A stretch of 64,000 nucleotides of DNA from Oikopleura dioica (taxonomy: Eukaryota; Animalia; Chordata), in assembly GCA_907165135.1 (NCBI GenBank), contig OU015569.1:6014001-6078000 (forward strand), given 5' to 3'. Both the position numbers and the translations under genes were made by a program. The notes under the pieces are model-generated. The model worked only from the letters and a program-made list of their open reading frames with translations. It had not been told where the DNA came from and did no database searches. The stretch's first letter is position 1. Every line of letters begins with the position of its first letter. This document shows, in pieces, positions 15,085 to 38,079 of this stretch.

Positions 15085-18000
15085 TTATAGAGGAATAGCT
15101 CGTGAAAATGTGCCATTCGCAAAAGCGATGATTAAATTAGCATTTGCATCAATAGAGATCGAAGATATTTTTTCTTGGACAATGATTTCAGCCATCAGCT
15201 TTGTTTGTCGATCGTCGTCGGAGAAAGTGTAGACGTAGACGGTATGTCGTGAAGCATTAGCGATAAGTAATGACTTCTTTCCATCTTTGATGATTCCGAG
15301 CTTTCGAGTAATGAATGGCATCTCAATCTCTTCAGTTACATCTTAAGAAAATAATATTTATGGAAGTAGATCAAAATATACCTTCATCAACTCCGGTGTT
15401 GACTGCATTTGCCGGTGTTTCTGTAAACATCATTTCAAGTTTGTCAGTTTTCTGTTTCAGGTTGACTTGATAATGTCGCACAGTCCGAGTATCATCTGAC
15501 TCTCTAATATAGATCCTTAAATTTTTCTCCATCCACGGGACTATGGTATCTGTGCCAACGACTTCCGATGTCTCAATGGGTTCTATTGACAATGTGTTTG
15601 ACCAGAGTTCATTCGTCATGCAGTTCATGAAGTTATTTTGGTAGTTTATAAGGATGCGCAATGATTTTCCTTGTAAAATATCCAGTGCTTTTATCGGATA
15701 TTGGATTCCAGGGCTCTCTTTTCTTTGGAAATATACAAGAATCCCATTCAAAACCATCAAAGGAGTGCACTTGAGAGGCTGTATTTTCCATTCTCCATTA
15801 GTGACTGTGACAATTTCATCCTCTGTGACCATGTAGACAACGTTCTTGAATTCTCCTACGAGCTTTATTGGTGATTTTACTCGCTGTTTCATGATTTCAT
15901 TCGTATTCAATTCGAAAATTCCATCAGAGGAGGAGAAAATAATTTCTGTCTCCTTATTCTGCTTCGCCGTAAGCAAAGTCTCAACATGGACAGACTTGAT
16001 TTTCTGTCTTGATGATGGTCGCCATTCTTTGATTGAGTGTCCATCACTTCCAATCAGCAGAACGTCCTCGAGATCAATGAATTCCACTGGTTTAGGTTCA
16101 TTATCATCCCAATTGAATGGTTTATCTCTAACGGATACCAGAGCTGAGCCATTCTGGAAACCGCGACAGGTTGTAGAAGCGAGAACTTTTCCACGGTGCG
16201 AGAAAATATGCGCAGCATTGACGCTAGTTGTAGCAAGTAAATTCCCGAAAAGATTGATTTGAGAAGGGTTTTCGAGCAGAGCGAAGTTCACCACTTCTTT
16301 GAGACCCTCAGGAGACTCTTTGAGAAGTGAAACCGTGCAATTTTCGTAGCAAACCGCAGCAGAGACATCAGTAGACTGTTTCTCGTTGAAGCATGCGTCG
16401 ATGATCTTTTTACGAGGGTAAAAACTACTGTTCTTCGTCGTCTGCTGCATTTTGTAAAACGGAAATGAAGTAACCATAAGGGTCGTCGTTACAAATTTTG
16501 AGGAAACTTGGAGATACTTTGACTTTCCGATTTGTTTGATAGCAATAATCGAACAGTCGTAGGAGTTTTCCTTGCGAGCTCTCAGAGGTTCTAAGCTTCG
16601 TAAGTCTCTTTTAGATGAAATCTTGAATGTTTCCACCGAGAAACCCTTGTCATCTGAAATAATCACTTGTATGTTTCCGGAGCGGCTTTCAGTGAGAAAG
16701 ACATTTTGATGATCTAGCACTCGCTGGTTCAGAGGAATGTTATATGCTCTTAAGAATTTTTCTTTTTCGGATAGGAAATAGAGGTCGTTAGATGCTGTTT
16801 GAACCATGATACAGAAACCACAAACATCAAAGTCACAGGAAACAGCTTTCTTCACTGTCACTCCGAAATCGCCAGAGCCAATTGTACCACTGAATGTAGA
16901 GGTAACTGAGTGCAAAGAAGATCCTTTGCAGTAGTCAATGTTTCCGTTATAATAGACGAAAGCATATCCATAGTTGCTCTTGAACATCGCGAAGACAAGA
17001 TCGGAACACGTCTTGATGGTCTCTTGATCGGATTGTTTGTCCCAAACTGCGACAGACGAGCCCGTGGTGGAGGCAATGGTTCTATCCCCGATGATAAAGT
17101 CGGTGACGGGTTCTGCAGAATCCACTGCTTCAGCTGTTACTGTGCCACACTTGGCGCTCATCCATCGCACAGCACCGGAACTGTAACCGACAGCAAGCAA
17201 AAGCTCATCTTTTCTTTGGTCGAAAGATAGTGCAGTTATAGAGGCCGAAATATCTGTCTCTATTTTTGCAACGCAAGAGCCATCGATCGCATTGTAGAGG
17301 TAAATTCTCGAATTCCAGAGGCCAACGGCTACGCGCTGAAAATCATAACCTGGCTCTTGGGGAGTGCTGCCAACGCCGACGGAAAGTGCTACCTTCCCTG
17401 GAACGTGATCGAAAAACTGAGACCAAATTAACTTGCCATCCTCTGATCGCCAAAAATTAAGACAGCGAGTATCTGCATGTAGTGTGACAAAGCTCTCTCC
17501 TGAAAGAGCGACGGCGATATCAGTTACCTCTCCGTGGCCGTTTTTGGCTACATTTTGGACGATGAAGTCAGTGTCATTACAGATAGAAATATTGCCATGA
17601 GCGACAACAATCGCGTTGGATTGACTCAACGCTATTTTATTCGTTCCTCTGAATGGAAAATGCTTGATAGTCTCTTCTCCGGTTGAAAAATCACGAGTTA
17701 GAAGATTTCCACTGTCGGATAAAATGGAGATTGAACCTTCTTTCGACGAGATAATCTGGCCACCTTGTGAGGACAGGAAGTTGAATGTTTCCGAGAAATC
17801 GATAACTTCGTAGATCTTATTTTCGGGAGAATCGCCAAATAAATTTTCGTCCTTGAAATGGCAATCAACGAGAGCTTGTTTCATTCCAATTTCAGCACTG
17901 TATCTATTATTCAAATACGAAATCTTCTCCATTCGAGATGTAAAATGTTTGTCCGAGAACTTCAAGATCTTCTTTGTGACAGATTTCAGCAAGTCAAGTT

Positions 18001-21000
18001 TTTTAAGGAGCAGAATTATCTTCGCATCGACAAATTTCTTGCATTGAGGAAGAGTAAGGAGAGAAGGCAAGTTTTCGAGTGCAGTACTCGTCATTGTCTC
18101 TTTATTGTTCTTCAATATATCAATATAGCTTTCAAGAATGCCATCTTTGAAATTTTGAAGTATATCGACTGAAGAAAGTCCGGCGAGAATAGATTTTTTT
18201 ATCATAACTTTATCATCGACGATATCAACCAGCCACTCCTCCAGTCCTGATGCATACAAGTGGATGGTTTTCTCATCAGCGGGCGCAGCACCAGACCATA
18301 AGTACAATGAGTTTAGCCATACTTCGTAGTTTATAGGCTTATCAAGAAGCATGCCAGCTGCAGCATACGCAAAATATCCATAAACTGGCTCGGATATCTT
18401 GAGTATAAATGGTCCAAGCTCATCGAAATTCTTGGGTAAATGAGGAATTGGTATCCGATTTGTAAAAGTACGTAGGCCAGCAGCAAGCATTTTCATAAAT
18501 GCAACGTTTGAGCTTCCTTCGAGGGTATCAATTTTAGAATGCACACGTCTGTCCGCTTCGAATCCTATGAAACCGTTGAAAATGACCTTCTTTTCAGATG
18601 GAGAAAGTCGTTTTAGATTCAGGAAATTACGGGCGGAATCCTGGAATATACGCTGAAGTGCAAAAGTGTTAGTCTGAACGCCGAAAACGACTGAAGAAGT
18701 AGCCCTGTGACTCAAAACTGCCCACTCGATTGTCTCTAACTGTTGGGCATTATCTATAAATATAGTAGCATTTGAAGGGAGCGAGCTTTCGAGTAGATTG
18801 GGGTCTTCTTTTGGCTTCACAACGACCCCAAGTTGACTTCTCACAGCGTCAAGAAGATCTTCTACGGTGGTTTCATCGGTGCACTCGTACCATGCTGTTA
18901 CTTTTTCCTTTTCAATCTCTTTTCTTCTTAAATACCTCATCAAACATGTTTTTCCAGCATCCTTAGTTCCGTGAATAACAGTAACCTGGCCTTCGAATAT
19001 GCAACTTTTCGCTCTATTGAGAACCATATGCCGTCCATGAAAAGCCATATCATCATCTTTTATCTTCCTTTGAGGATTTTTGTTGCATTGAGCGATAGCA
19101 CTTGGAAGGTTTTGCATGATCTCATGGGATAAATCGCTGATATATTGAAAATCCACAGTAGAAAAGCCGAGTTTTTCTTCAAGTTCGTCCAGACGAGGAT
19201 CCCTTGAGAGCATTTGTTTTTTCAGCAGGATCGTTGGTTTACTGAAGTGTTTTGCCGTTAGTAATTCAGCTGCTGTAATAGATATTTTCTTGTTATCTTC
19301 GCCCCACGAGCTTGTAAAGTCGAACCCAGCTGGGGGAAATATCTCCTCGTAAAGTCGGCCGGGAACAGAACCAAAGCGCTCTCCAAGTATGCCGATAACA
19401 ATATCCGCTTCAATAATTTTCTTGAGACAAAAGGTTGTAGCACGAATCTGATTCTTGAAATTTTCAGGAAATCGAATATCAACCGGCTGCAAGAATACGT
19501 CATCGCGAGTTTTATTGAAGGCTGGTATGATAGAGTCGACGATTCTTTGCCGTTCTGTGGATAAGTCCATATACGTTGACGAAATAAATACTTTCAAAAT
19601 TTGTTTTCCATTTTGTCCATTGCCGGCAGCATCATCTTTATTATCAAAGTCATCAAGATGGACATCAAATTGCGAGGGATAAGCTTCAATATCTCTGATA
19701 ACATCTGATTTACTGTCCTCGGCAATAAATCGCAAGACTTGCTCATTGCATCCACTGACGCTTACGATTTTTGGAATCTTATTTCTGTTAAGGTTAAAAG
19801 AAAAAGAAAGATCTTTGAGTCGATGTTAAAAGCTCCATTAACCCTTTCCTATCGCCAAGAGAATACACACGAAGCTTGTTGGTAGCAAAGTCCGCACGTG
19901 TTCGAAGGTATTCCACCGGAAGGTCTCTCTCGTTGACGAAAACGAGACGGTTCACAGTCAATGGTTGTTTTTCAAAGAGGATCCAGTCTATCATAGTTTG
20001 CATATTCTTATATCGCGCGAAAGTTGTTTCTCTATCTTTCCATTTATTGACCAAGTCAATCAACGAAGAAGTTTTCTTATCGAAGTGAAGTCGGCTAACG
20101 CTTACGGGATCTTCATGATCTCCGTCAAAGTGATTTTCCGCCTCATAGTAATAAAGATCAACATCTTGGCAAGATTTGATTGCACAAGCAGCCATCACCA
20201 AAGCTTGGAAGTTTTTGTCTGCCGTGAGACCAGTTGGCTTTTTGTCTTTGCCTGGAAGGACATCCTTCTTGAGTTTTTTTATAAAGAAAATAGTGCGACC
20301 AGGGACAGATGGAACGTTGTTAATTGAGTGCAGGATTGCTTGATTTAGACAGATCTTGTATTTTTTAATCGTTCCCAATAATGTTTTCTTCCATATTTGA
20401 GATCCAACAGCTAAGTCCGTTTTCAAGTGGTAAAGTTTGCTCGTTTTGACATTCACGTGGTTGACCAGATTTTTCGCACGAAAGTGTTCAGCTTTGCAGA
20501 AAGCAAGCAAGTTTTTCCAATTCACGTCGTCTAGGTAGTCATCTTTGGGCACCGGCTTTGTAGGCTGTTTCGATAAATTTATAAGAAATTCCTTGAAATT
20601 TTCTTTCGCTTCAAAACTCTCTGGAGGACTCGGAACTTTAAGGGATTTCTTCTTCCATCCTACATCAAGAACTCTTTTGACACCGCGACCATATGGCTTC
20701 AGGACATCTTGCCAAGATCTTTCATTGCGGGTTGCCTGATCCTCCATTTCATTAACTTCATCCTCAAGTGCCCGAATTATGTCAAATGCAGCGAAGAATT
20801 GAGAAGGCATCTGCTTCGATCTAAAGATAGAGTTATTGGTATTTTCCTTCCATGGGAAACTAACCTTGCAACAGCATTTCTATTGCTTATAAATTTCCTG
20901 AAAAGGCCATCACACTCATCGTTGATTCCGCAATAAAAAATATTACGAATGTTTCGCAGCCCTGCCATGTATGGAAGCTTACGCGACTTGATAAGACCTT

Positions 21001-22200
21001 CCCACGCTTCAGCAACATTTCCCTTCGCAGTCAGTTCAGTTTCCCAAGTCATCGCCGTTTTGAGCTTCATTCTCTCCCCGCAGCGTTCGCGATCGTAGGG
21101 CTCGGTCAGTCGCGTTTTTGCGTACTCTTCGTATGACGACGGGTACCGCTTACCGAGGATTCCCATGACATATTCAGCGGGATCTTTGATATGCAGAGTT
21201 CTGATAAGATTCTTGAGTGTATGGACTTTTGCAGGAGGATCTTCGTCGGACACGATTTCAGCTGGTTGCTTTTTCTTCCGCTGTGGACGCTTATTGTGTT
21301 TCTGCAGTTGATACTCGTCAAACTCTCGGAATTTGTCTGTCATCGCTTTTCGAAGCGAAGTGCTGATTGTGCCACTATTTAGTTTCTCGTTCATTTCCGC
21401 GATCTCTATCCAATCTGATGGAGTGACAACGAGTGGCGAGAAATACTTCCGAATGAATTGCCGACTTTTTGGATGAGAAGCTGCGACAGCCGCGATAAAG
21501 TTCGATGCACTTCTTATATTCAAAAAACGACGAGCGTAAAGAGCAACCTGTAGGACAAATTCTGGTTTTTCGGAGTCGATTACAGCCTCAATTAAACTTC
21601 GGAAGGATTTAACGCTTGGATGTTCAATCTTCTTGAAGTCGACCCGGTTGACCAGACACAGGTTGACCTCATGAAGTAGAGTGATCTTTTTCTTGCGTTC
21701 ATTTTCTTCTCGTTCAGCAAGCTCATATTTCTGGTCGTCCTGTCCAGAGATATCTTCGAAAAGATTTGTTGTCTCGAGAAGTTTGACTTCATTTGAAGTG
21801 ATCGTTTTGGATCGTATCGAGACATGAGTATCCTTAGGTACGAGCTGAACATCGTCTGGAGTCCAACATGATGACGGTTTTTGATAGAGTTCGTCACTGA
21901 AGACTTCTTCTTTTTCTGGCTCTAAAGATGCTAATGACCCCGGTGACTCGATAGGAGAGGCCAGTTGGAGCAAGTAGTTCTCATTTCCAAAAGAGGATGA
22001 TGTTCGATTGAGCAAGAGTTTATTGTCGAGCGTTTTGTTCACTGATGTTGATCCTTCGAGGTTTTTATTCGCTAACAACGAGGAATCTGCAAGTGATGAT
22101 GATAGAAGTTCCTTATTTTGGAGATTTTGGGTTCCTAAAACAAAACAAGAAAGCAACAAAAAGTATAAGATAAATTACCAAAGAATGTGCAAGCAAGATT
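15085..22200 (-). CDS. TEP1: Telomerase protein component 1 / vault-associated TEP1 (TROVE - DUF4062 - NACHT - WD40)
   Basis: TROVE motifs EFVLQVALYARRFLNIRS...PSDWIEIAE and WETELTAKGNVAEAWEGLIKSRKLPYMAGLRN. DUF4062 motif LKVFISSTYMDLSTER. P-loop HGTKDAGKT, followed by a WD40-like beta region. Introns: 20864-20821 (GT-AG, 44 nt), 19848-19785 (GA-AG, 64 nt) and one near 15380-15340. The 5-prime exons (to about 22660) are unresolved. Confidence 0.92.
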
Positions 22201-24193: not shown

Positions 24194-25088
24194 ATCAGCT
24201 ACCAAGAAACGCTTCCACTTTTAAATTTGGCTCAGAGTTAATGAAATCAAGTGTACAACAGATACGGAACTCGAGAAGCCAGCTCGATGCAATTTAAGTT
24301 TCACGTATTATCTCTCCTTCACCTTTTTCAACCCCAAATGCCAAATCGAAGCGATCGGCCGGTCCATATCAAACTGAATTGTCTGTGTACAGCTCTGTTC
24401 TAATTCACTTAAATTGCCATTTTAGAAATAAATTTTCATTTTCTTGGGCGGAAACGGAAAGAAAGGAACAGTCGTCAAAATCCTTAATTTTTATTTTTAA
24501 TCAAAACATGCCAAAAAGCACTCTTATGATAGGTGTCTTATTTATCATGCAAACTGCAAAATAGTTCCCAATTTTCTCAGCATTCTAAGAGTTGTGTTAG
24601 TAACTTATTATTCGCGTAAGGCGCCACTTATGAGGGCATTTAAGCGATAACAACATGTTGATTCTAGATTTGGTGATGGAGCTGATTTGCGTCTTTTAAA
24701 CTGAACATTGCTCCTGTGGCTTTGTAAAAATGACCTCAAGTTAGTGTTAGCGCACACAGAAATCTGGCTGGAGTTGGTGGCGAGCAAAGTCCGAAGTTTT
24801 TAAAGCACAGCTTGACGGGAGAACCTTGATGCCACTCGTAAAGAGCTGCACGAAAAAGAACAAACATATTTACACAGGAACCGTCCTCAAACATTGTTCG
24901 AGATTAGGAAATCACTACTTGAACCGACATCTAACTGACATTTTTTAATTTGCTTTTTTTCACTTGCTTTAAAATTTTTGTGATCTAAAAGAAGAAACAT
25001 GTCGCTCGTTAATTAATTAAGAGAGTCACTTCCGGTCAACTTTAAGAAATAACTTACCTTTTATTTCTACGAGAAAAAAAACACAAAA

Positions 25089-28000
25089 ATGGGTCTGCGC
25101 CGGAGTATCGGCTTCATCTCCGGCAGTGGGTTGACTATTGGTAGGCTTTTGATCCTTCATTTGTCATTTTTATGTGCATTTTAGGTGCAATGGTTGGCAG
25201 CGGGATTTTTATGTCTCCCGGAGAAGTTCTAGGGGCAGCTGGTTCTGTCGGAACGTCACTTCTAATGTGGGGCACCTGCGGACTCATCTCTTGTGCTGGG
25301 GCTCTTTGTTTCTTAGCCGAGTTTCGCTCATTCTTGACATTTCACAAAATGCATGTCTGTTTCCAACGCTAAACTCTTCCGCAGAGCTTGGTCTAATGTA
25401 TCCAGAGTCAGGGGGAGCCTATGTTTATATCAACGAGGCTCTTGGAGATCTCTTCGCATTTTTGTACGCGTGGTCGTCGATTCTCATCGTTCGCCCGGCG
25501 TCAGGTAAAATTCCAGAGTCACACTGCTCCGAATTTAAATTCTAGCTGCAATCGGTGCCGTTTCATTTGCTGACTATATGTGTGAGGTGTTTTACGAGCC
25601 AGGCTGTGCGCCGTCGCTTTTGAAGAAGCTTATTGGAATGTCTCTCATTCTCTTCCTTGGAATGGTCAACGCCAAGAGCCTGAAACTCTCAAGCCTAGTT
25701 TCTCGCGATCAACAACTTTAGTTTAGATCGTTTTTAACCTGAAAATTTGAGTGGAGCCGTCGCCACTTGGATTGAACGAGCGTATTTTATCTTCGAGATG
25801 CGCTCTCGATGAGACCAGGCGTATTTACACCAAATAAAAAGTTCGGTGTATGATTTGACTGGAATTAGGCTAGCGCGGCGTCATTCAGCGTGCGTTAATC
25901 GTATTTGGTTGGAAACAAACCCGCAGAATTAGCTTCACGAGTGAGGAATAAAAATGGGCTCCCTTTTTTGGTATTCATCCGTTAATGAATTATTTTAGTC
26001 AAGTTTATTTCTGTAATTTCGTGCGGGCACAAATTGATCCTCTTTGAACCTATAAAATCGTAAAGAGAAGAATGTCTCTCTTTTTCTATGGAGATAAGAG
26101 ATGTTAACCCTAATCACCATTGCCGGCCATCAAAGGCCACTTTCGAAGCTGGAAATGTACTCTTGAATATTCCTTCCGTTGTGTTCCTTTCAAACCCCAG
26201 TAACATAATTTTCTTGCTAACTCGAAACGGTGAAAATAAAACGAATGCAGAAACTTTTCCCAGCTGGTTGAATAATCTATCGACGGTCGGGAAGGTGTTG
26301 GCTCTCATAATTATCATTATCTGTGGAATCGTCAACCTGTTCAAGGGCTACACCGAACATTTGCAGCAAGGTTTCGAGCCAATAGAAAATGACTTCAAAA
26401 TATCTGTCGGTGAGTGTTTCCTAGTGTAAGGCGAGAACGGACTTTAATATACATTCAGGTGCACTTGCTTCAGCGTTTTACGCAGGAATGTGGAGTTTTG
26501 ATGGATGGGAGGCATTGACAAGGCTTTTACAAGAATGAAATAGCATGCACTCACCAATTGAGAATGCACACGTCAAGAAATGAAAAAAGTCATTTTCAAA
26601 AAAGCCTTCTTTAGAACTCTGTGGGGGAAGAAGTGGCTAATCCTGGAAAGACAAAGTTTTATATCCTTCATGAAAGGCCGTGTAGACAGTCGGAACAAAG
26701 TACGATGTTTAAAACTTAACAAAGAATTTTCCAAGAGTCATTTGAAACACGTTCTAAGATTCACTTTAGTTTGGAAGTTTCTTTTAGAGCCAGATTCGTA
26801 ACAAATCTAGAACAGTAAGCAGCACAGCCGTCCCTTTTGTCTCGCCACGGATATAAACGAAATGAAAAACGGTAGAAGAGCGATTTATTTATATCCGTTT
26901 TAAAGATTCTGTACGTGCTGACAAACGTAGCTTATCTTACCCTGCTTTCGCCGACCCAGGTGGTGTCTTCGGACGCACTGGCTTTTTCTTTCGCAAGTTT
27001 GGGTCGATCCAATCTTTTTAAACAAGTTATAAGAGATGTTTAACCCGTGAAAACGCAAGTACTCGTCCGAGTTTGCGCTTTTTATGGCCGCTTCCGTTGC
27101 GCTGAGCACGTTTGGAGCTGCAAATGGGCATGGGATAATATCGAGATCACTGTGTTTCTATAAAGAGAATCGCACTCTAATCTAAGGGTATACTGCTCAT
27201 GCTGGTAAGAGTTTAGGCCTTTTTGTACCTTAATTCATTCGGCTGGTGCGGCTTATCAGTTTGCGCTAATCCGATCTATTGGTCGAAATAATCGCCGCTG
27301 CGGCACACTCGTCGAGTTGCCAATAAATCCAAACCGCGGAAACGGACAAACCAAACTCTGCTGTGCTTTGTATATTGTACGAATATCAGCCCGGCGCTCA
27401 CTTCTACAATAAAATTCTACGAGTATCCCTTTCTAAAGAAATTGTCTGACTGGAGCGCGACTGACCTTAGCTGGCGCTAGAAATGGACATCTGCCGCGGA
27501 TGCTTGCTTATTTGAGCATTACTGAGCGACTGCCGATTCTCTCGGTGATTTTTAACTCAGGAGAGGCTTGTAAAACAAGAAGCCTTTTTATAAAAAGCTT
27601 TTATAGCCCGAGAAGCTCTTTCAATAATTCTCCTCATTCCAGAAAACTCGAATTTCTTAACCCTTGTAAAGTAAGTCAAGATAAGTGAAGCCAGGGCCGC
27701 TGATTACTTCGCAGACGTTAATCTTCGCTCAAAATGCAGCTGCGAACTTTTTGGTGACCGCATTTTTCAATCTCAAGTTCTTTTTAATTTACCCTGACGC
27801 GTGGACTCCTCTTGGGTTTCAAAGCAAAATTCTAGCTTTACGGGCTTCACGATCTGGATATTCTACGGAATGGCGTTCGCCGCAGTTTTGATTCTACGAT
27901 GGAAATGTCCCGATATTCGCCGCCGGTACAAAGTACCCCTGACAAAGTTTTTACAATTTAGTCCTTGAACTGCACAAATCTCGCAAAATGAGCGGCCGCT

Positions 28001-28399
28001 CCCTTGATATCGAAAAGTTAAACGTTTTCGTCGCGCATTACTAGAACATAGTGTCGATTCGAGGGCGCCGCTTTCCGGCAGAGATCTTTGAAAAACTGGG
28101 CGCCAGATACTTCCGATTCTTTGCGCTCTTGTTGCGCTTTTTATGACCATAGGAAGGGGTTTCACTGCAGTAATATTCATTAAGCAGGTGCTCTGAAACC
28201 AGTAAAGCACCGATCGTCGCCAGTCCGGAAATCGAGTATTTAGGAACGCGTTTCAAAACACCTCCTTCGATGATGCTTTTGACGAAATGCTAATTTAAAT
28301 TTTTGAATTTTCGAAAAGTTTTGAAATTCGGGAAAACCAGTGGTGTGCGGAATCATTGCTGCCGGCTTGCTAATTTACATTCCCTTACGGCTGGAATTC
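25089..28399 (+). CDS. SLC7 L-type amino-acid transporter light chain (b0,+AT/LAT-like), at least 17 introns, last exon not located
   Basis: MGLRRSIGFISGSGLTIGAMVGSGIFMSP, GALCF.ELG...SGGAY, AFYAGMWSFDGW, EEVANPGKNFPR, VALSTFGAANG..TGARL..AGARNGHLP, IWIFYG and RYKVP are all APC/LAT signature motifs. Donor dinucleotides: GT x5, GA x3, GC x1, GG x1 (tentative), CC x3, AC x3, AA x1. Confidence 0.92.
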
Positions 28400-31096
28400 G
28401 TAAGTTGCATAATTTTAAATAATTACCATCGCAAACAAACTTTTCACAATTCAGCTATTCAAATATTCACAGTATATTATAAACAATATTCGCGCAATTT
28501 AACCAGCAAAAAACAATTGTCATACTAATGAAAAATTTTTAATCCGCTAAAAAAACTTAAATTTCGAATAGAAAACGAATTTTTTGCGAAGAGAAATAAT
28601 ATCGATTATATTCTGATTCTTGGGGCTGCAAGCGCGAGAATTATTCGATTGAATTCGGTACAGTTCCCTTTTCAAGTACTACGCCCCACTACTGCTTTTT
28701 GTCGAGGCAGGTGCGCATTTCGCCAACCGCTATTAGAATTTCGGCAGTGGCGGTAATATTCGCCACCAGAAGGCGCCAAGCGTCAGCTGTTGCATCAATA
28801 AAGAGACAGCCCGAGTTTATATGCCGGCTTCGACGAGGGCTAAGTTCGCCTCATAAATTTCCGTGTTTCGAAAATTGCCGACGGTGGATTTAAACGGCAC
28901 CCTCGCGGGGATAAGGAATTTAGCCCCGCTGCCTAAATCACTCCACCAGTCACTGTAAAATCAGGCGTTTCATCGGCCCATGCTCAGGACGGCCTTGCTG
29001 CCTTTTAATTCTTATTTTTAGTCGTTTTCGCTGGGAGTACGTGCAATTAACTGGATAGAAAAGCAATTACAGGTTAGCCTACCTTTATATTTTCCAATTT
29101 TATTTTGATAAAAATACTATCACGCAGAAGAACGTTTGCCACCGAAACATATAATTTAGCTTCTGCTCGAGGTAGCACCATACGAAAAGCTAGCCAGCGA
29201 GTAAAAGAAAAAAAGAAAGCAGACTTTGAATTTTGCAAATTAACACTTCTGAATAAAGATTGCTGAGCGGTCCTAACACCGCCCGTGACAGAGTTCTTTG
29301 GTCCAGCGCTTCGAAAAGAACAGTTACAGATAATCTAATTAGCCAAATAAACAGCCAGTGCTACTTCTTTTATCAGCGAAGTTAAGCTGCCCAAAGAGAG
29401 TATCTCCGTAGATAATCTGAAATTGTGACACTCTCCTATTTCCAGAATCTATCAAAGCAGATGATCCGGCACTCGAGCGTATCAGAGGATCTTCCATCTC
29501 GAATGTTCATCCTTGGCGCGATCCGTTGCGGCGTCGCGTCACTGTGGCAAGTGAGCTGCAGTTATCTCGAGTTCTATCTTGGCGGAGCGAGAGTTCAGGG
29601 CGAACTGCGCGTGCTGACCTCGCTGCCGAATGCGATAAGACTGCCTTCTGATTTTGCGAGCGTGTGATCTGCGTTGCGCCTGTTTACGGGCGCACCCTTG
29701 TTCATCGGATTAAAACGAAACTTTGGAAGGCGGTTTTTAGTTTTTGTTTGGTAGCAAAGACAAACTAGTTTATTGTGTGATGCGCGACAAAAAATGGGCC
29801 GTCGGTAGCAGAAGTGATTTTGCGAACTATTACGTAACAAGTTACAAAAAAGATAGATTGTCGAAATAATAGATCCCAAGCAGACACAAGTCAAGAAATG
29901 ACAGAAAAAGTAATGGCAAAGCACGTGAGCCGGATTTAAACGGTTAAAGGAGGGTGGTTGATTATGGATAAGAAGAGAGTAATAATATTTATTAAGAGAT
30001 AGAAGACAGAGTGAGAGATAGAGTGATGAACGGTAGCTGGTGTTGGTCGTTGGTGGGGTTCGATCGGATTGGTGCGATAACTGGTGTTTAATGAGATAGT
30101 ATGAGTGATTACCGCAGTTGGCTTCTGCGTGCCTGAAGCCTAGGGCCGGGCGGACAGAGTGCCCGAATCCAGCCACACCTTGGGGCAAGGCACGACCTGA
30201 AATTATCACCAGAGCAGGCGGGTGCTGGACGAGTCGGGGCACGCGGCAGAAGCCAGCGTGCAGCTCGGTGCGGCTGCGTGCGCGACTCCTCCTGCACTCG
30301 CCCGCGCTGCTGTGATCCGGGCAAGGTGCATCTTTGCTAAAAATATATAAAATTGAAATATAATTCTACTATACAGTAATTTCCATTTCTGACTCGCCGC
30401 ATGTTGTCTCGCGCCACATTCACTATAGTTAATATGTAAAATATATAGAATTTAATTAATAATAATAAATCGATACTGTTAATGAATGCGAACAGCGCGA
30501 GCGTTCTAGTGTGGCGCGTCGGACATGTCGTAGTACCATAGCTCCTGTCCAATATAAATCATAGATATGTAATATGAAAAATATTGCTCGTTATTGGACA
30601 AGAATTATGCTAGTGTGTGGGCTGCGAATAATTTTTTTACAAATATCTGCGAATAACGCATTTTTGAAATAATGCGAGTACCACGCGATCGATCGCGTTA
30701 CAGCAGCAGAATTGCGTGTTTTTTGATGTAGTTATAGATTTGATCGGAAATTAAATAGGGTCGTAGGTTGGTTTCGTCCTGTGTGGTTTTAGTGTGTAGG
30801 TTTGTCTGGGTTTGTTTTGATTGGTGCGTGTGTTTTTGGTGGTAGGCTTGATATAATGGTGTGACGAGCTAATGAACGAGTTTTTTGAACAATATTTGAA
30901 CTTTTTGAAAAAAGCGAATTGATGAATAAATATCTGTAGTGTGCCTAAAGCGTAGGTTGATATATCCGGGTTAGCCTAGTGGCTAGTTGACTATAGAAAC
31001 TGGAACTGTGCGTGGGTTGTTGGTGTTGTAGGCGTCGTTTCTTCAGAGTCGATATAGCCAATCAGATTCTTCGACGGGCTAGGATTCTGGCAGGCG

Positions 31097-35183: not shown

Positions 35184-38079
35184 TAAAGAAAAGGTTCTTG
35201 TATATAAAATATTCTCGAATAATATAAAAAGAGATGAGTTCAAAAATATGAATGCTGATAAAATCGAGTACGGAGGGAGCAACTCTCTGTTCGCCTCAGA
35301 ATTCTACCGCAAAACACATCGAGCGGTGGCGCGGTTATCGAAGCGACCGTGCCCGTGCTCGAGCCCCTCGACCCTTCCCTACCCACCCTGTGCTGCCAGA
35401 GCTGCCGAAAGGTCCTCTTCTGCGCTTCGGAGGGGAAGAAAAATGAAATTTTCGCCGCGCACTCGATCACTACTCAGCTTGAACGGTCAGCGGCACGTTT
35501 TTTCACTTTCCACGTTCTTTCAACATTGTAAGTTTTGGGATAAAGAGCCTCAGCCGTCCCGCAGAGCAGAACGGCGACTACCGGGTGGTGTCACCTACGT
35601 CGGGCTTTGATTGGGTGGAGGAGCTCAGACTTGCGCGACCAGTGTTGAACGTGCTAGCTGCTGATGTTCGTGCGAGGCCGGAGGGCCGAGTGCGCGCAAA
35701 GCACCACGCTGAGGAGCGTACACCACCGCCCACGCGGCACCTACACATAAGGGAGCAGTTGGTGCTCAGGTACCTCCACCATCACCACGCCGCCCAGCAC
35801 AAAACATCGGCACCATAAGCACCACCGCCAAATTACCGCACCCAAAGTACTAACACAAGTACCACTTGGTGCCAGCAGCGGCACTACCACCAACGCCCGC
35901 CCGAGCTCTACACACTTCAACAACTTCGAAACTCTCTTACATATCTCCTCTTGGCAGTTCATGGTCAATGTCAACATGAACAAAATTTCACTAATGGGCT
36001 TTCATTTTCTTTCTTTAAATTTTTCCTCCCGCAAAATAGAACCAACCAAAACATCCTTAATAGAACTCACTCTCGTTTCAATTTCAGTCAAAATTTTTTA
36101 AAGTTATGCTCGCATAGAACTTACTCTAAGAAGGTAGCTGAATGGTCAGATGTTTCGCTGACCTTTGGGTTTTTTTGTTTCACCACTTCGGAAAAGTCAT
36201 CAAGTTTCTCTCAAGGCGTTCAAACTGATAATCAGACGCGATTGTTGTTTTCGTTCGATTTTCTTTCGATTTTGGCTTTCTCTTGGGGTGTTCTATGTCT
36301 CTGGTGCTCGGACTCTGGCGCAAACAATGAAACTCTGGCGCGACAAGTGGCCGGCAGCTCTCTGAGGCACCAGCAGTAGCAGGGCGGTGGTGGTGGTGCT
36401 GCAGATAGCCGGATAGTGTAGAGAAGGCTACGGCCGGCCGAGCGGCGCTCGAGCCCCACCATTCTCTTCCTCCGGGCGGGGAGCACCACTATTCACTATT
36501 GAGGAGAGCCGCGCCGCACCCGCGCCACCGTACTAAAGCGGTGGCAACCAAGACCCTCCGCCAGTGTTAACCTAGCCCACACCGCGGAGAACTTTCAACG
36601 AACTTTCAACGCGAAAAATAGAACTTGTCCATTTAAGGCTGCACTGGTCACCCAAGTTAAACTTGGAGATATTTCATGAAGCCTCCATGAAAAATACTCA
36701 TAATTCATCACATTTTTATTTTAATTTTCCTTTTAAAGCTTTCCATTAGAAAAATTTTTGTTCTCAAAATTTTCTAACATCAAGAAAGAAAAATAACATT
36801 TTTGATATTCGGAGAATCACGCGCTTCACGAATATTTTGTGGCGCCGCGAAATGACATTTTTGCGGTCGACGAAATTCACTCTGCTTGAGAGACTTCTGG
36901 ATCTTTAGTGAAATTTTGAGGAATCAATCCGCGCTCAGGAATAACCTCTCAAGCATCACGAAATAGACGTTTTCGATCAAGACAAGGTCAAAGAGGGGCA
37001 AACCAAATTAGAACTTGTTCATGCGCCATGTTCTAGCTTTGACCGCGGGAGATTACGTCCTGTCGCAATATTTGGGCACCAGATAACACCAAGCCGCGAA
37101 AATGAAACCCATGCTTATCATTCAGTCTGCTTGACGTCTCCAAGCCTACCTTTGTTCTGGTTTCATACGAAAATGCTGCCACCAAAATACTCTTGCAACG
37201 CACGTCTTTTTGCTTTTCTGCACTATTTTATGTCTCTGAATTATCTATTCTGTCGGTTGTAATGTCCTCTATTTCGCACTCCTGGACGCCTGGTAGCCGA
37301 CGTCATAAAATGTTTTACGGTCATCCTTAGCGTAATGAACATCACAAGGAAATAATTATTTCGGAAAGGCAACGTTTATTAATATTGAGTATCACTTCTA
37401 GCGGCTGCCTAACCTTACGCGGGAGCCAATTAGTGCCATCATCCATCAAAATTCTTATGTTGCCTTACAAGAAAACCTTTCACATTTTTCACGTTTTCAC
37501 TTTTCGCCGCCTCACAAATAAATTTTCAGACATTTACCTTAAGGTATTTCGTGCCGCCTTCGCTGACGCCGTACGTTTTACTCATTCCAAGATCTCTCTG
37601 GCTTTCTGTTCTTCTCTTAACTTTGGGATTCACTTATTTCTTAATATTCTCTTCTCGCCTTGCCACGCTTAACCGTTTTGAAGGGTTTGGCTTTCCTGGG
37701 CGCACTGGATGAATTAGCAACCGTAGCGAACCGCGGTTTATCGCTCCGTTCAATTAGCGATTATTCTTCGCGTGCACCACCGCCGTTGTAGTCATTCTCC
37801 TGCTTTCTTTTTTTGCTTTTGAACTTTTGACACGGCTCCAGAATTTAGACGAGTGATGAATGGGTTCGCTTGTCAAATAATAAAATTATCGTCAGGTAGA
37901 GACAATCACGGACACCCGCCGAGACCTGATAAATGCAGGCTTATTAACGAGGCAATAGCGCTAATTGGTAGCTACGTAGCTGCAAACAATAACAATCTCT
38001 GACGTTCATATATATCACCTTGTTAGACTGCAAGTTTATTACGCACCTTTGCTCTGCTAACGTATGATTATGCTATCAG

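Follow-up and report, generated by a model that had tools for sequence, protein, structure and literature searches.

Seven introns of an SLC7 transporter gene of Oikopleura dioica lie outside the known intron types of this animal and are closed by a terminal helix

The G at the first intron position (+1) is among the most conserved signals of eukaryotic gene expression. In the larvacean tunicate Oikopleura dioica, non-canonical G[A/C/G]-AG introns make up 11-12% of introns (PMC8008620, citing Denoeud 2010; PMC7072748). In Fritillaria borealis, also a larvacean tunicate, 95% of the introns are non-GT/AG and are removed by a U2-type spliceosome; larvaceans are without the minor spliceosome and have lost the U12-type small nuclear RNAs (PMC13326754). 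Most introns of Fritillaria have an AG at the start and an AC or AT at the end; they carry YAY triplets just before the 5' site and as the last three intron bases, and have their splice sites in terminal inverted repeats of introner-like transposons (PMC13326754). Inverted repeats near the ends also occur in other transposon-derived introns, namely introners and introns derived from miniature inverted-repeat transposable elements (MITEs) (PMC11282704, PMC12130899), and the nonconventional introns of Euglena follow the paired pattern 5'-N3-CDG...CH'G-N5-6|R (PMC12501133; PMC4770533). The present work concerns a window of 64,000 nucleotides, by which the whole stretch of DNA that was analyzed is meant, from Okinawa-lineage O. 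dioica (OKI2018_I69; X-specific region, record OU015569.1 of 12.96 Mb, assembly GCA_907165135.1). It contains a gene for an amino acid transporter of the SLC7/LAT type in which seven selected introns, termed odd introns in the following, fit none of the types known from O. dioica; their defining feature is a terminal helix and not a particular dinucleotide.

The gene model comprises 17 exons and was read as far as 28399, with a tentative C-terminal end of the protein:

25089..28399, plus strand: SLC7/LAT-type amino acid transporter gene (conceptual splice, AA_permease_2, matches to solved structures)
25089-25140, 25185-25316, 25385-25504, 25546-25693, 26264-26409, 26459-26517, plus strand: exons 1 to 6
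26615-26650, 26725-26744, 26823-26844, 26906-27001, 27060-27159, 27471-27560, plus strand: exons 7 to 12
27616-27670, 27836-27941, 28107-28152, 28208-28243, 28341-28399, plus strand: exons 13 to 17

In the conceptual splice of these 17 exons, no stop interrupts the 441 codons that are read to 28399. The gene belongs to the SLC7/LAT proteins (APC superfamily), as both annotated fragments of it match the Pfam family AA_permease_2. The four central odd junctions give a 43-residue peptide whose gapless alignment to the LAT proteins had been proposed beforehand; computed against solved SLC7 structures, the alignment is gapless with E values of 1e-8 to 3e-6, and its partners are xCT (248-288), y+LAT1, LAT1 (276-316), LAT2, and b0,+AT (233-274). 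The same peptide also matches y+LAT2 and Asc-1 in the solved-structure search, in which exon 2 alone had no match. A protein search with exon 4 returned the truncated annotated model, one open reading frame (ORF) of an ortholog and one repetitive protein, but no full-length O. dioica SLC7. The introns of the gene are 7 odd ones, 4 GT-AG, 1 GG-AG, 3 GA-AG, and 1 with either a GT donor at 27154 or an AT donor at 27160.

An original prediction, made from the letters of the window, had proposed the seven odd introns, and all of its junctions were found at the positions and with the letters that it gave, each with an exonic G before the intron and an AG at its end. The introns and the arms of their stems are the following:

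25317..25384, plus strand: odd intron 2, ttag|CC...gcAG|, 68 nt; stem 25319-25324 GAGTTT / 25371-25376 AAACTC
25694..26263, plus strand: odd intron 4, caag|CC...ccAG|, 570 nt; stem 25697-25703 AGTTTCT / 26249-26255 AGAAACT
26518..26614, plus strand: odd intron 6, ttg|AC...ttAG|, 97 nt; stem 26520-26528 AAGGCTTTT / 26600-26608 AAAAGCCTT
26651..26724, plus strand: odd intron 7, aag|AC...aaAG|, 74 nt; stem 26654-26661 AAGTTTTA / 26710-26717 TAAAACTT
26745..26822, plus strand: odd intron 8, ttg|AA...gcAG|, 78 nt; stem 26751-26756 GTTCTA / 26808-26813 TAGAAC, which carries on as AGATT/AATCT
26845..26905, plus strand: odd intron 9, tcg|CC...aaAG|, 61 nt; stem 26847-26857 ACGGATATAAA / 26888-26898 TTTATATCCGT
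27942..28106, plus strand: odd intron 14, ctg|AC...ccAG|, 165 nt; stem 27946-27952 AGTTTTT / 28091-28097 AAAAACT

Read in the AG-keeping register, the introns start, in the order listed, with CC, CC, AC, AC, AA, CC, and AC, after the upstream triplets TAG, AAG, TTG, AAG, TTG, TCG, and CTG, and their last three bases are CAG, CAG, TAG, AAG, CAG, AAG, and CAG. The canonical AG end is consequently present in all seven (CAG four times, TAG once, AAG twice), and a canonical GT or GC start in none of them; in the shifted register the starts are GC or GA. A +1 G together with a 3' AG, as found in the G[ACG]-AG class, is not available at these junctions, since the frame allows only one of the two, the G or the AG, to stay, and keeping both breaks it. 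The U1-type sequences claimed for positions +3 to +6 are there (GAGT, TAGT, and AAGG), as is AAAG, with an RAGT-like motif in 5/7 odd introns; their placement at these positions depends on the register that is chosen.

The strongest common feature of the odd introns, absent from the original prediction, is a helix that closes each of them at a near-fixed distance from both ends. All seven have a perfect Watson-Crick stem of 6-11 bp between the ends. Its 5' arm opens after the first 2-6 nt of the intron (at +3 to +7), and 6-9 nt separate its 3' arm from the 3' border; from intron 2 to intron 14, the 5' offsets are 2, 3, 2, 3, 6, 2, and 4 nt, and the 3' distances 8, 8, 6, 7, 9, 7, and 9 nt. The summed stem length is 54, compared with 32.6 +/- 2.4 (maximum 42) in shuffles of the same terminal 30-mers, and the closing helix is present in the minimum-free-energy fold of all six short odd introns. 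An in-register stem was found in 7/7 odd introns but in only 2/10 G-start introns (Fisher p 0.002), the latter being 8 introns of the SLC7 gene and the 2 GT-AG introns of a neighbouring TROVE gene. The two G-start introns with such a stem are the GT-AG intron 25505-25545 and the GA-AG intron 28153-28207, and the GA-AG intron is the G-start counterpart of the odd-intron architecture.

Relatives of the Okinawa lineage carry several of the same joins. The sequences compared are the ortholog of a distant lineage, lineage B, on a JGI marine contig (L001) and a 99%-identical longer version of it (L009); a Tara Oceans metagenome scaffold (L008; DNA), reached through a 57-residue ORF that matches the 43-residue peptide; and three ENA metagenome contigs close to the window (L005 with 98% identity, L006 and L007 with 91% each). 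On L008, exon 5 is followed by a GT-AG intron 5, then by exons 6-9 without interruption, and then by an intron starting tcg|TTttgg. The spliced exons 5-9 of the window (283 nt) and the L008 coding sequence (283 nt) are 71% identical with 0 gaps, and because exons 6-9 are contiguous in L008, junctions 6, 7, and 8 are joins that are present in the genome of a relative. Lineage B is without the GT-AG introns 1 and 5, L008 is without introns 6-8, and intron 6 is found in the Okinawa lineage and in lineage B. The simultaneous loss of three adjacent introns is a classic signature of recombination with cDNA; if such recombination took place in the L008 lineage, its ancestor spliced introns 6-8 exactly at these joins.

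The ortholog comparison that had been proposed as a check showed that non-G starts recur in other lineages, in the form of AA, CG, and TT, next to one GA opposite an Okinawa AC. In lineage B, intron 2 lies at the same place and reads ctag|AAaacgg...ttgaAG|, with the join CFLELG in both lineages. Its intron 4 has the same register, caag|CGC AGTTTTTAACC...GGTTAAAAACT gcttcaaAG| in L009, and the junction, read as caag|CGcagttttt...caaAG|, gives the join LSSWLNN, as do the junctions of the original prediction. The GA start is that of intron 6 of lineage B, ctg|GAatggcttttc, where the Okinawa lineage has AC before the same GGCTTTT. The AG of intron 4 is kept in four lineages. Intron 4 of L009 is about 840 nt long and contains many other repeats; it is closed by AGTTTTTAACC/GGTTAAAAACT, a stem of 11 bp at an offset of 3 nt and a distance of 9 nt, in the same register as in the window and with one pair changed on both sides, from C-G to T-A. 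L008 has the same 3' arm of intron 4 as the window, and in lineage B another stem, of 12 bp, closes intron 2. Judged from these alignments, the helix outlasts deep divergence between lineages. Contigs L005, L006, and L007 share with the window CATTG|ACAAGG, TTTAG|AAC, GAAAG|ACAAAG, and CAAAG|AAT; as three independent contigs carry the same letters, introns 6 and 7 and the 3' end of intron 4 cannot be products of an assembly error.

Two observations on contigs stand apart. A MITE-like palindromic repeat (GAAGCGAAGCTTCGC core, GTTAACCCCTGCGGG-type ends) lies in introns of the other lineages, at 3161-4467 of L001, 2809-3647 of L009, and 430-544 of L008; the end of L001 repeats the start of exon 3, and L001 is accordingly probably mis-joined through this repeat. 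The matches of a degenerate pattern of micro-exon 7 to two long freshwater-metagenome contigs (L003 and L004, which share an identical 150-nt stretch) were rejected as chance matches unrelated to the window.

By their substitution pattern, the exons are under purifying selection. Exons 1-4, joined at the junctions of the original prediction, have a length of 452 nt in both the window and L001, with a proportion of synonymous differences (pS) of 0.71, a proportion of nonsynonymous differences (pN) of 0.097, and an omega of 0.047. For exons 5-8 compared with L006, pS is 0.24, pN 0.03, and pN/pS 0.126. In the 36-nt micro-exon, no more than two sites vary, each at a third codon position and with three alleles. 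The view that the locus does not look like pseudogene decay is borne out by the omega of 0.047 and the pN/pS of 0.13, by the reproduction of the junctions in L008, and by the 17 stop-free exons. The odd introns themselves diverge less from L006 than synonymous sites do (26/287 vs 13/54; p 0.004), which hints, on small numbers, at constraint along the whole intron. Over 26150-26724, the divergence from L006 is 8-11% for the odd introns, 24% for synonymous sites, and 18% for the GT-AG intron 5. As to transcripts, in RNA reads of a relative the end of exon 6 is followed directly by AAT TCG GTC GGC GAA GAA GTC, which encodes N-S-V-G-E-E-V.

The odd introns share traits with each of the systems mentioned above. 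The G[ACG]-AG introns of O. dioica belong to the same genome, and the SLC7 gene itself has four of them; the AG acceptor and the preceding exonic G are common to both, the intron 28153-28207 has the same closing helix, and the lineage B ortholog of odd intron 6 has a GA start. The odd introns differ from them in their first base, which is C or A in the AG-keeping register, and in lying outside the sites that annotation pipelines permit. As in Fritillaria, the host is a larvacean tunicate, but the form here is HN...AG after an exonic G, with no YAY and without the AG start and the AC or AT end. Inverted repeats are present near the ends in 7/7 odd introns. None of the odd introns has a second copy within the 64-kb window, where a BLAST search with each intron found no repeated copies and no repeat element family. 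Traits shared with transposon-derived introns in general are the inverted repeats near the ends, a 5-nt direct repeat AAAGA across both borders of intron 7, and the presence or absence of introns 6-8; most odd introns are nevertheless only 61-97 nt long, the other six show no clear target-site duplication, and the arrangement in L008 is equally explained by loss of three adjacent introns via a cDNA copy. The closest architecture is that of the Euglena nonconventional intron, with a likeness confined to the paired motif and its spacing. Both have variable terminal dinucleotides, a short paired motif a few nucleotides inside each end that would bring the exons together, and often a purine that opens the next exon; the spacing of about 3 nt and 5-6 nt in Euglena is alike in kind, the spacers of the odd introns being wider. 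The Euglena introns, by contrast, have a fixed CAG/CTG core and need no AG, whereas varied stems of 6-11 bp, an invariant AG, and an invariant exonic G are found here in a chordate host; the CDG/CH'G core does not appear in the arms GAGTTT, AGTTTCT, AAGGCTTTT, AAGTTTTA, GTTCTA, ACGGATATAAA, and AGTTTTT.

Further signatures were sought within the introns. The U12-type 5' motif ATCCTT is absent from the seven odd introns, and an Rfam search of 24500-29500 found no RNA family within introns. Inspection by eye for sites of the IRE1 type and of the tRNA type (bulge-helix-bulge) revealed neither CNG|CNGN loops nor a helix between exons; CTRAY-like strings were seen, also by eye, in or beside some 3' arms, for instance CTTAAC in intron 7. 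In the full-text literature search, which did not cover Henriet 2019 and Denoeud 2010, neither non-G starts nor end-closing helices turned up for O. dioica introns, and this answers, within the same coverage, the literature check that had been called for on non-G donors.

The published gene models bear on how the locus is to be explained. The public annotation has here a 134-residue model at 25089-25721 (Oidioi.mRNA.OKI2018_I69.XSR.g15012.t1, which covers exon 4) and a 184-residue model at 27084-29204, with nothing annotated between them. In g15012, a GT donor near 25241 removes 25 conserved residues, after which intron 4 is read through to a stop. The re-annotation of these genomes used GAAG, GCAG, GGAG, GTCG, and GTAA sites only (bioRxiv 10.1101/2023.05.09.539028), and it is because annotation permits only G-start sites that g15012 is truncated and the gene is split in two. 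The use of nearby G-start donors, which had been set as one refuting case, would give a somewhat different protein, and the alternatives are in frame: GC 25316 to AG 25386 or the annotated GT near 25241 for intron 2, and GC 25693 to AG 26250 for intron 4. Their existence, together with the equivalence of two cut registers, means that the claim of a frame restored only with the proposed junctions holds for the open frame of 441 codons but not for its exclusiveness. Hardly any weight can be given to these donors, since the 25 residues that the annotated one removes are conserved with synonymous change relative to L001, no equivalent donor exists in lineage B with its CFLELG and LSSWLNN joins, and there is no such option for the micro-exon chain, which is contiguous coding sequence in L008. 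It is also very improbable that the Okinawa copy is silent or a recent pseudogene with an open frame as a leftover. No transcripts of it were found and its published annotation consists of two fragments only, but such fragmentation is expected when only G-start sites are permitted, the pN/pS within the Okinawa clade is 0.13, and neither a stop nor a frameshift occurs over 17 exons.

We give a little better than even credence to the view that the seven are genuine introns of a functional SLC7 gene and form a helix-clamped non-GT class, cut by the spliceosome at G|HN...AG| with the aid of the helix. The same introns and helices could instead be cut one base to the left, with starts GC, GC, GA, GA, GA, GC, and GA and ends CA, TA, or AA, the 3' cleavage then falling within the AG. 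The mRNA would be identical, all seven starts would fall into the known G[ACG] class (PMC7072748, PMC8008620), the chemically important +1 G would be kept, and intron 9 of L008 would acquire a GT start, gtttc|GTtttgg. This shifted cut is unlikely, though not negligibly so. It loses the exonic -1 G that is present in 7/8 of the other unambiguous introns of the gene and that a cut after G keeps; it moves the RAGT-like motif off +3 to +6, where a cut after G places GAGT, TAGT, AAGG, and AAAG in the region of U1/U6 pairing; and it needs a non-AG 3' end in 7/7 introns, with an AG conserved in four lineages at intron 4. Between the two registers, the AG-keeping one is distinctly the more probable, and the proposed class without an intronic +1 G stands as far as real, selected introns with non-G orthologs are concerned, while its lack of a +1 G depends on a single base of register. 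A structure-guided, non-spliceosomal excision, as proposed for Euglena, in which a nuclease and a ligase would measure their cuts from the helix, appears improbable. It would account for the likeness to 5'-N3-CDG...CH'G-N5-6|R (PMC12501133), with 2-6 nt before and 6-9 nt after the stem, for the purine that opens the next exon in 5/7 cases, for first two letters that vary freely between lineages, and for a helix that masks the U1/U6 pairing region. The invariant AG and exonic G and the RAGT-like +3 to +6 nevertheless look spliceosomal, G-start introns including one GT-AG intron share the helix, and the CAG/CTG core is absent. Moreover, we know of no structure-guided nuclease/ligase intron machinery in animals, which also counts against this possibility.

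In the favoured account, the odd introns would be a class of non-GT introns clamped at both ends by a short helix, with the first two intron letters free (CC, AC, and AA here; AA, CG, TT, and GA in orthologs) and with a preceding exonic G, an RAGT-like motif at +3 to +6 in 5/7, and a terminal AG as the signals that are kept. A permissive U2-type larvacean spliceosome would remove them by cutting at G|HN...AG|, and the helix may hold the two splice sites together and so compensate for the missing GT. We infer that this splicing takes place in the Okinawa lineage itself. Several points weigh against this account. A +1 G is normally required for spliceosome chemistry. Each odd intron follows a G and ends in G, and G|HN...AG| and |GHN...A|G consequently give the same mRNA at all seven introns, which is compatible with either register. 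The 5' arm overlies +3 to +10, where U1/U6 would pair and with which it may compete. Shuffles with the register fixed give a summed stem length of 18.3 +/- 2.6 (maximum 29) against the observed 54, but this register window was picked post hoc, and just one compensatory pair was seen across lineages. The junction of intron 14 was placed only by frame continuity and by what we take to be the b0,+AT sequence at this point (YKVPL|ILPILCALVALFMT); a protein search with the exon-14 ORF had no match, leaving this junction without cross-lineage support. The species-labelled RNA reads are 90-95% alike, come from a relative, and provide neither joints nor coverage of the Okinawa gene; for the RNA-read check that had been suggested, the relative's passage from exon 6 into N-S-V-G-E-E-V stands beside an absence of split reads from the Okinawa lineage. 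A search of RNA assemblies with words of exons 2-4 found no O. dioica match and one marine metatranscriptome with 3/49.

These results suggest that the splicing machinery of O. dioica can recognize some introns from their shape instead of their start letters. It is possible, though doubtful, that they reflect a second, structure-defined intron code in this animal, with a helix 2-6 nt and 6-9 nt inside the borders and any first letters, perhaps independent of U1 or of the spliceosome; if true, such a code would be a parallel to the Euglena nonconventional introns that is invisible to present annotation. Fritillaria shows that a larvacean spliceosome works without GT, but that animal is hard to culture, whereas O. 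dioica is tractable and has public genomes of several cryptic species. Helix introns with free first letters, if confirmed, would permit a direct test of splice-site choice without GT, of RNA structure replacing U1, and of origin by insertion. Gene predictors that accept only G starts split or truncate such genes, so that gene counts and orthology are distorted.

The remaining introns of the SLC7 gene and the neighbouring gene are the following:

25141-25184, plus strand: GT-AG intron 1 (conceptual splice)
25505-25545, plus strand: GT-AG intron, the sole one of the gene with a 6-bp stem in register
26410-26458 (intron 5) and 27671-27835, plus strand: further GT-AG introns
27002-27059, plus strand: GG-AG intron without an end-closing stem
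27154 (GT) or 27160 (AT) to 27470, plus strand: intron with two candidate donors, from the reading of the frame
27561-27615, plus strand: GA-AG intron without a closing stem
28153-28207, plus strand: GA-AG intron closed by a stem of 7 bp, GGTTTCA/TGAAACC, at a 5' offset of 5 and a 3' distance of 7 nt
28244-28340, plus strand: GA-AG intron with a 9-bp stem at offsets 7/14
15371-22159, minus strand: TROVE/TEP1-like gene whose exons are very long (1454 codons in one ORF), with GT-AG introns 20864-20821 and 19842-19785

For the intron with two candidate donors, which has no closing stem in register, the GT donor at 27154 would make the protein two residues shorter in a conserved segment, and the AT donor at 27160, after an exonic T, presumably gives a gapless fit to the LAT1 sequence. 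Both introns of the TROVE gene are plain GT-AG introns without closing stems. A strict scan of the whole window for G|NN...AG with a hairpin found 60 stems compared with 33 +/- 6 in shuffles, while a loose version of the scan was uninformative. The flanking frames of 18 candidates from the strict scan revealed no clear new intron. The strict configurations occur on both strands at about 1.8 times the shuffle frequency, none of them being confirmed as an intron; examples are 36982-37051 (aag|ACAAGG..GGGAG|), 2225-2294 (ccg|ACAATT..CCAG|), and 1151-1231 (cag|TCAGTTTCT..AGAAACT..AAG|). Several of these window-wide candidates share ACAA or AGTTTCT/AGAAACT motifs with the SLC7 introns.

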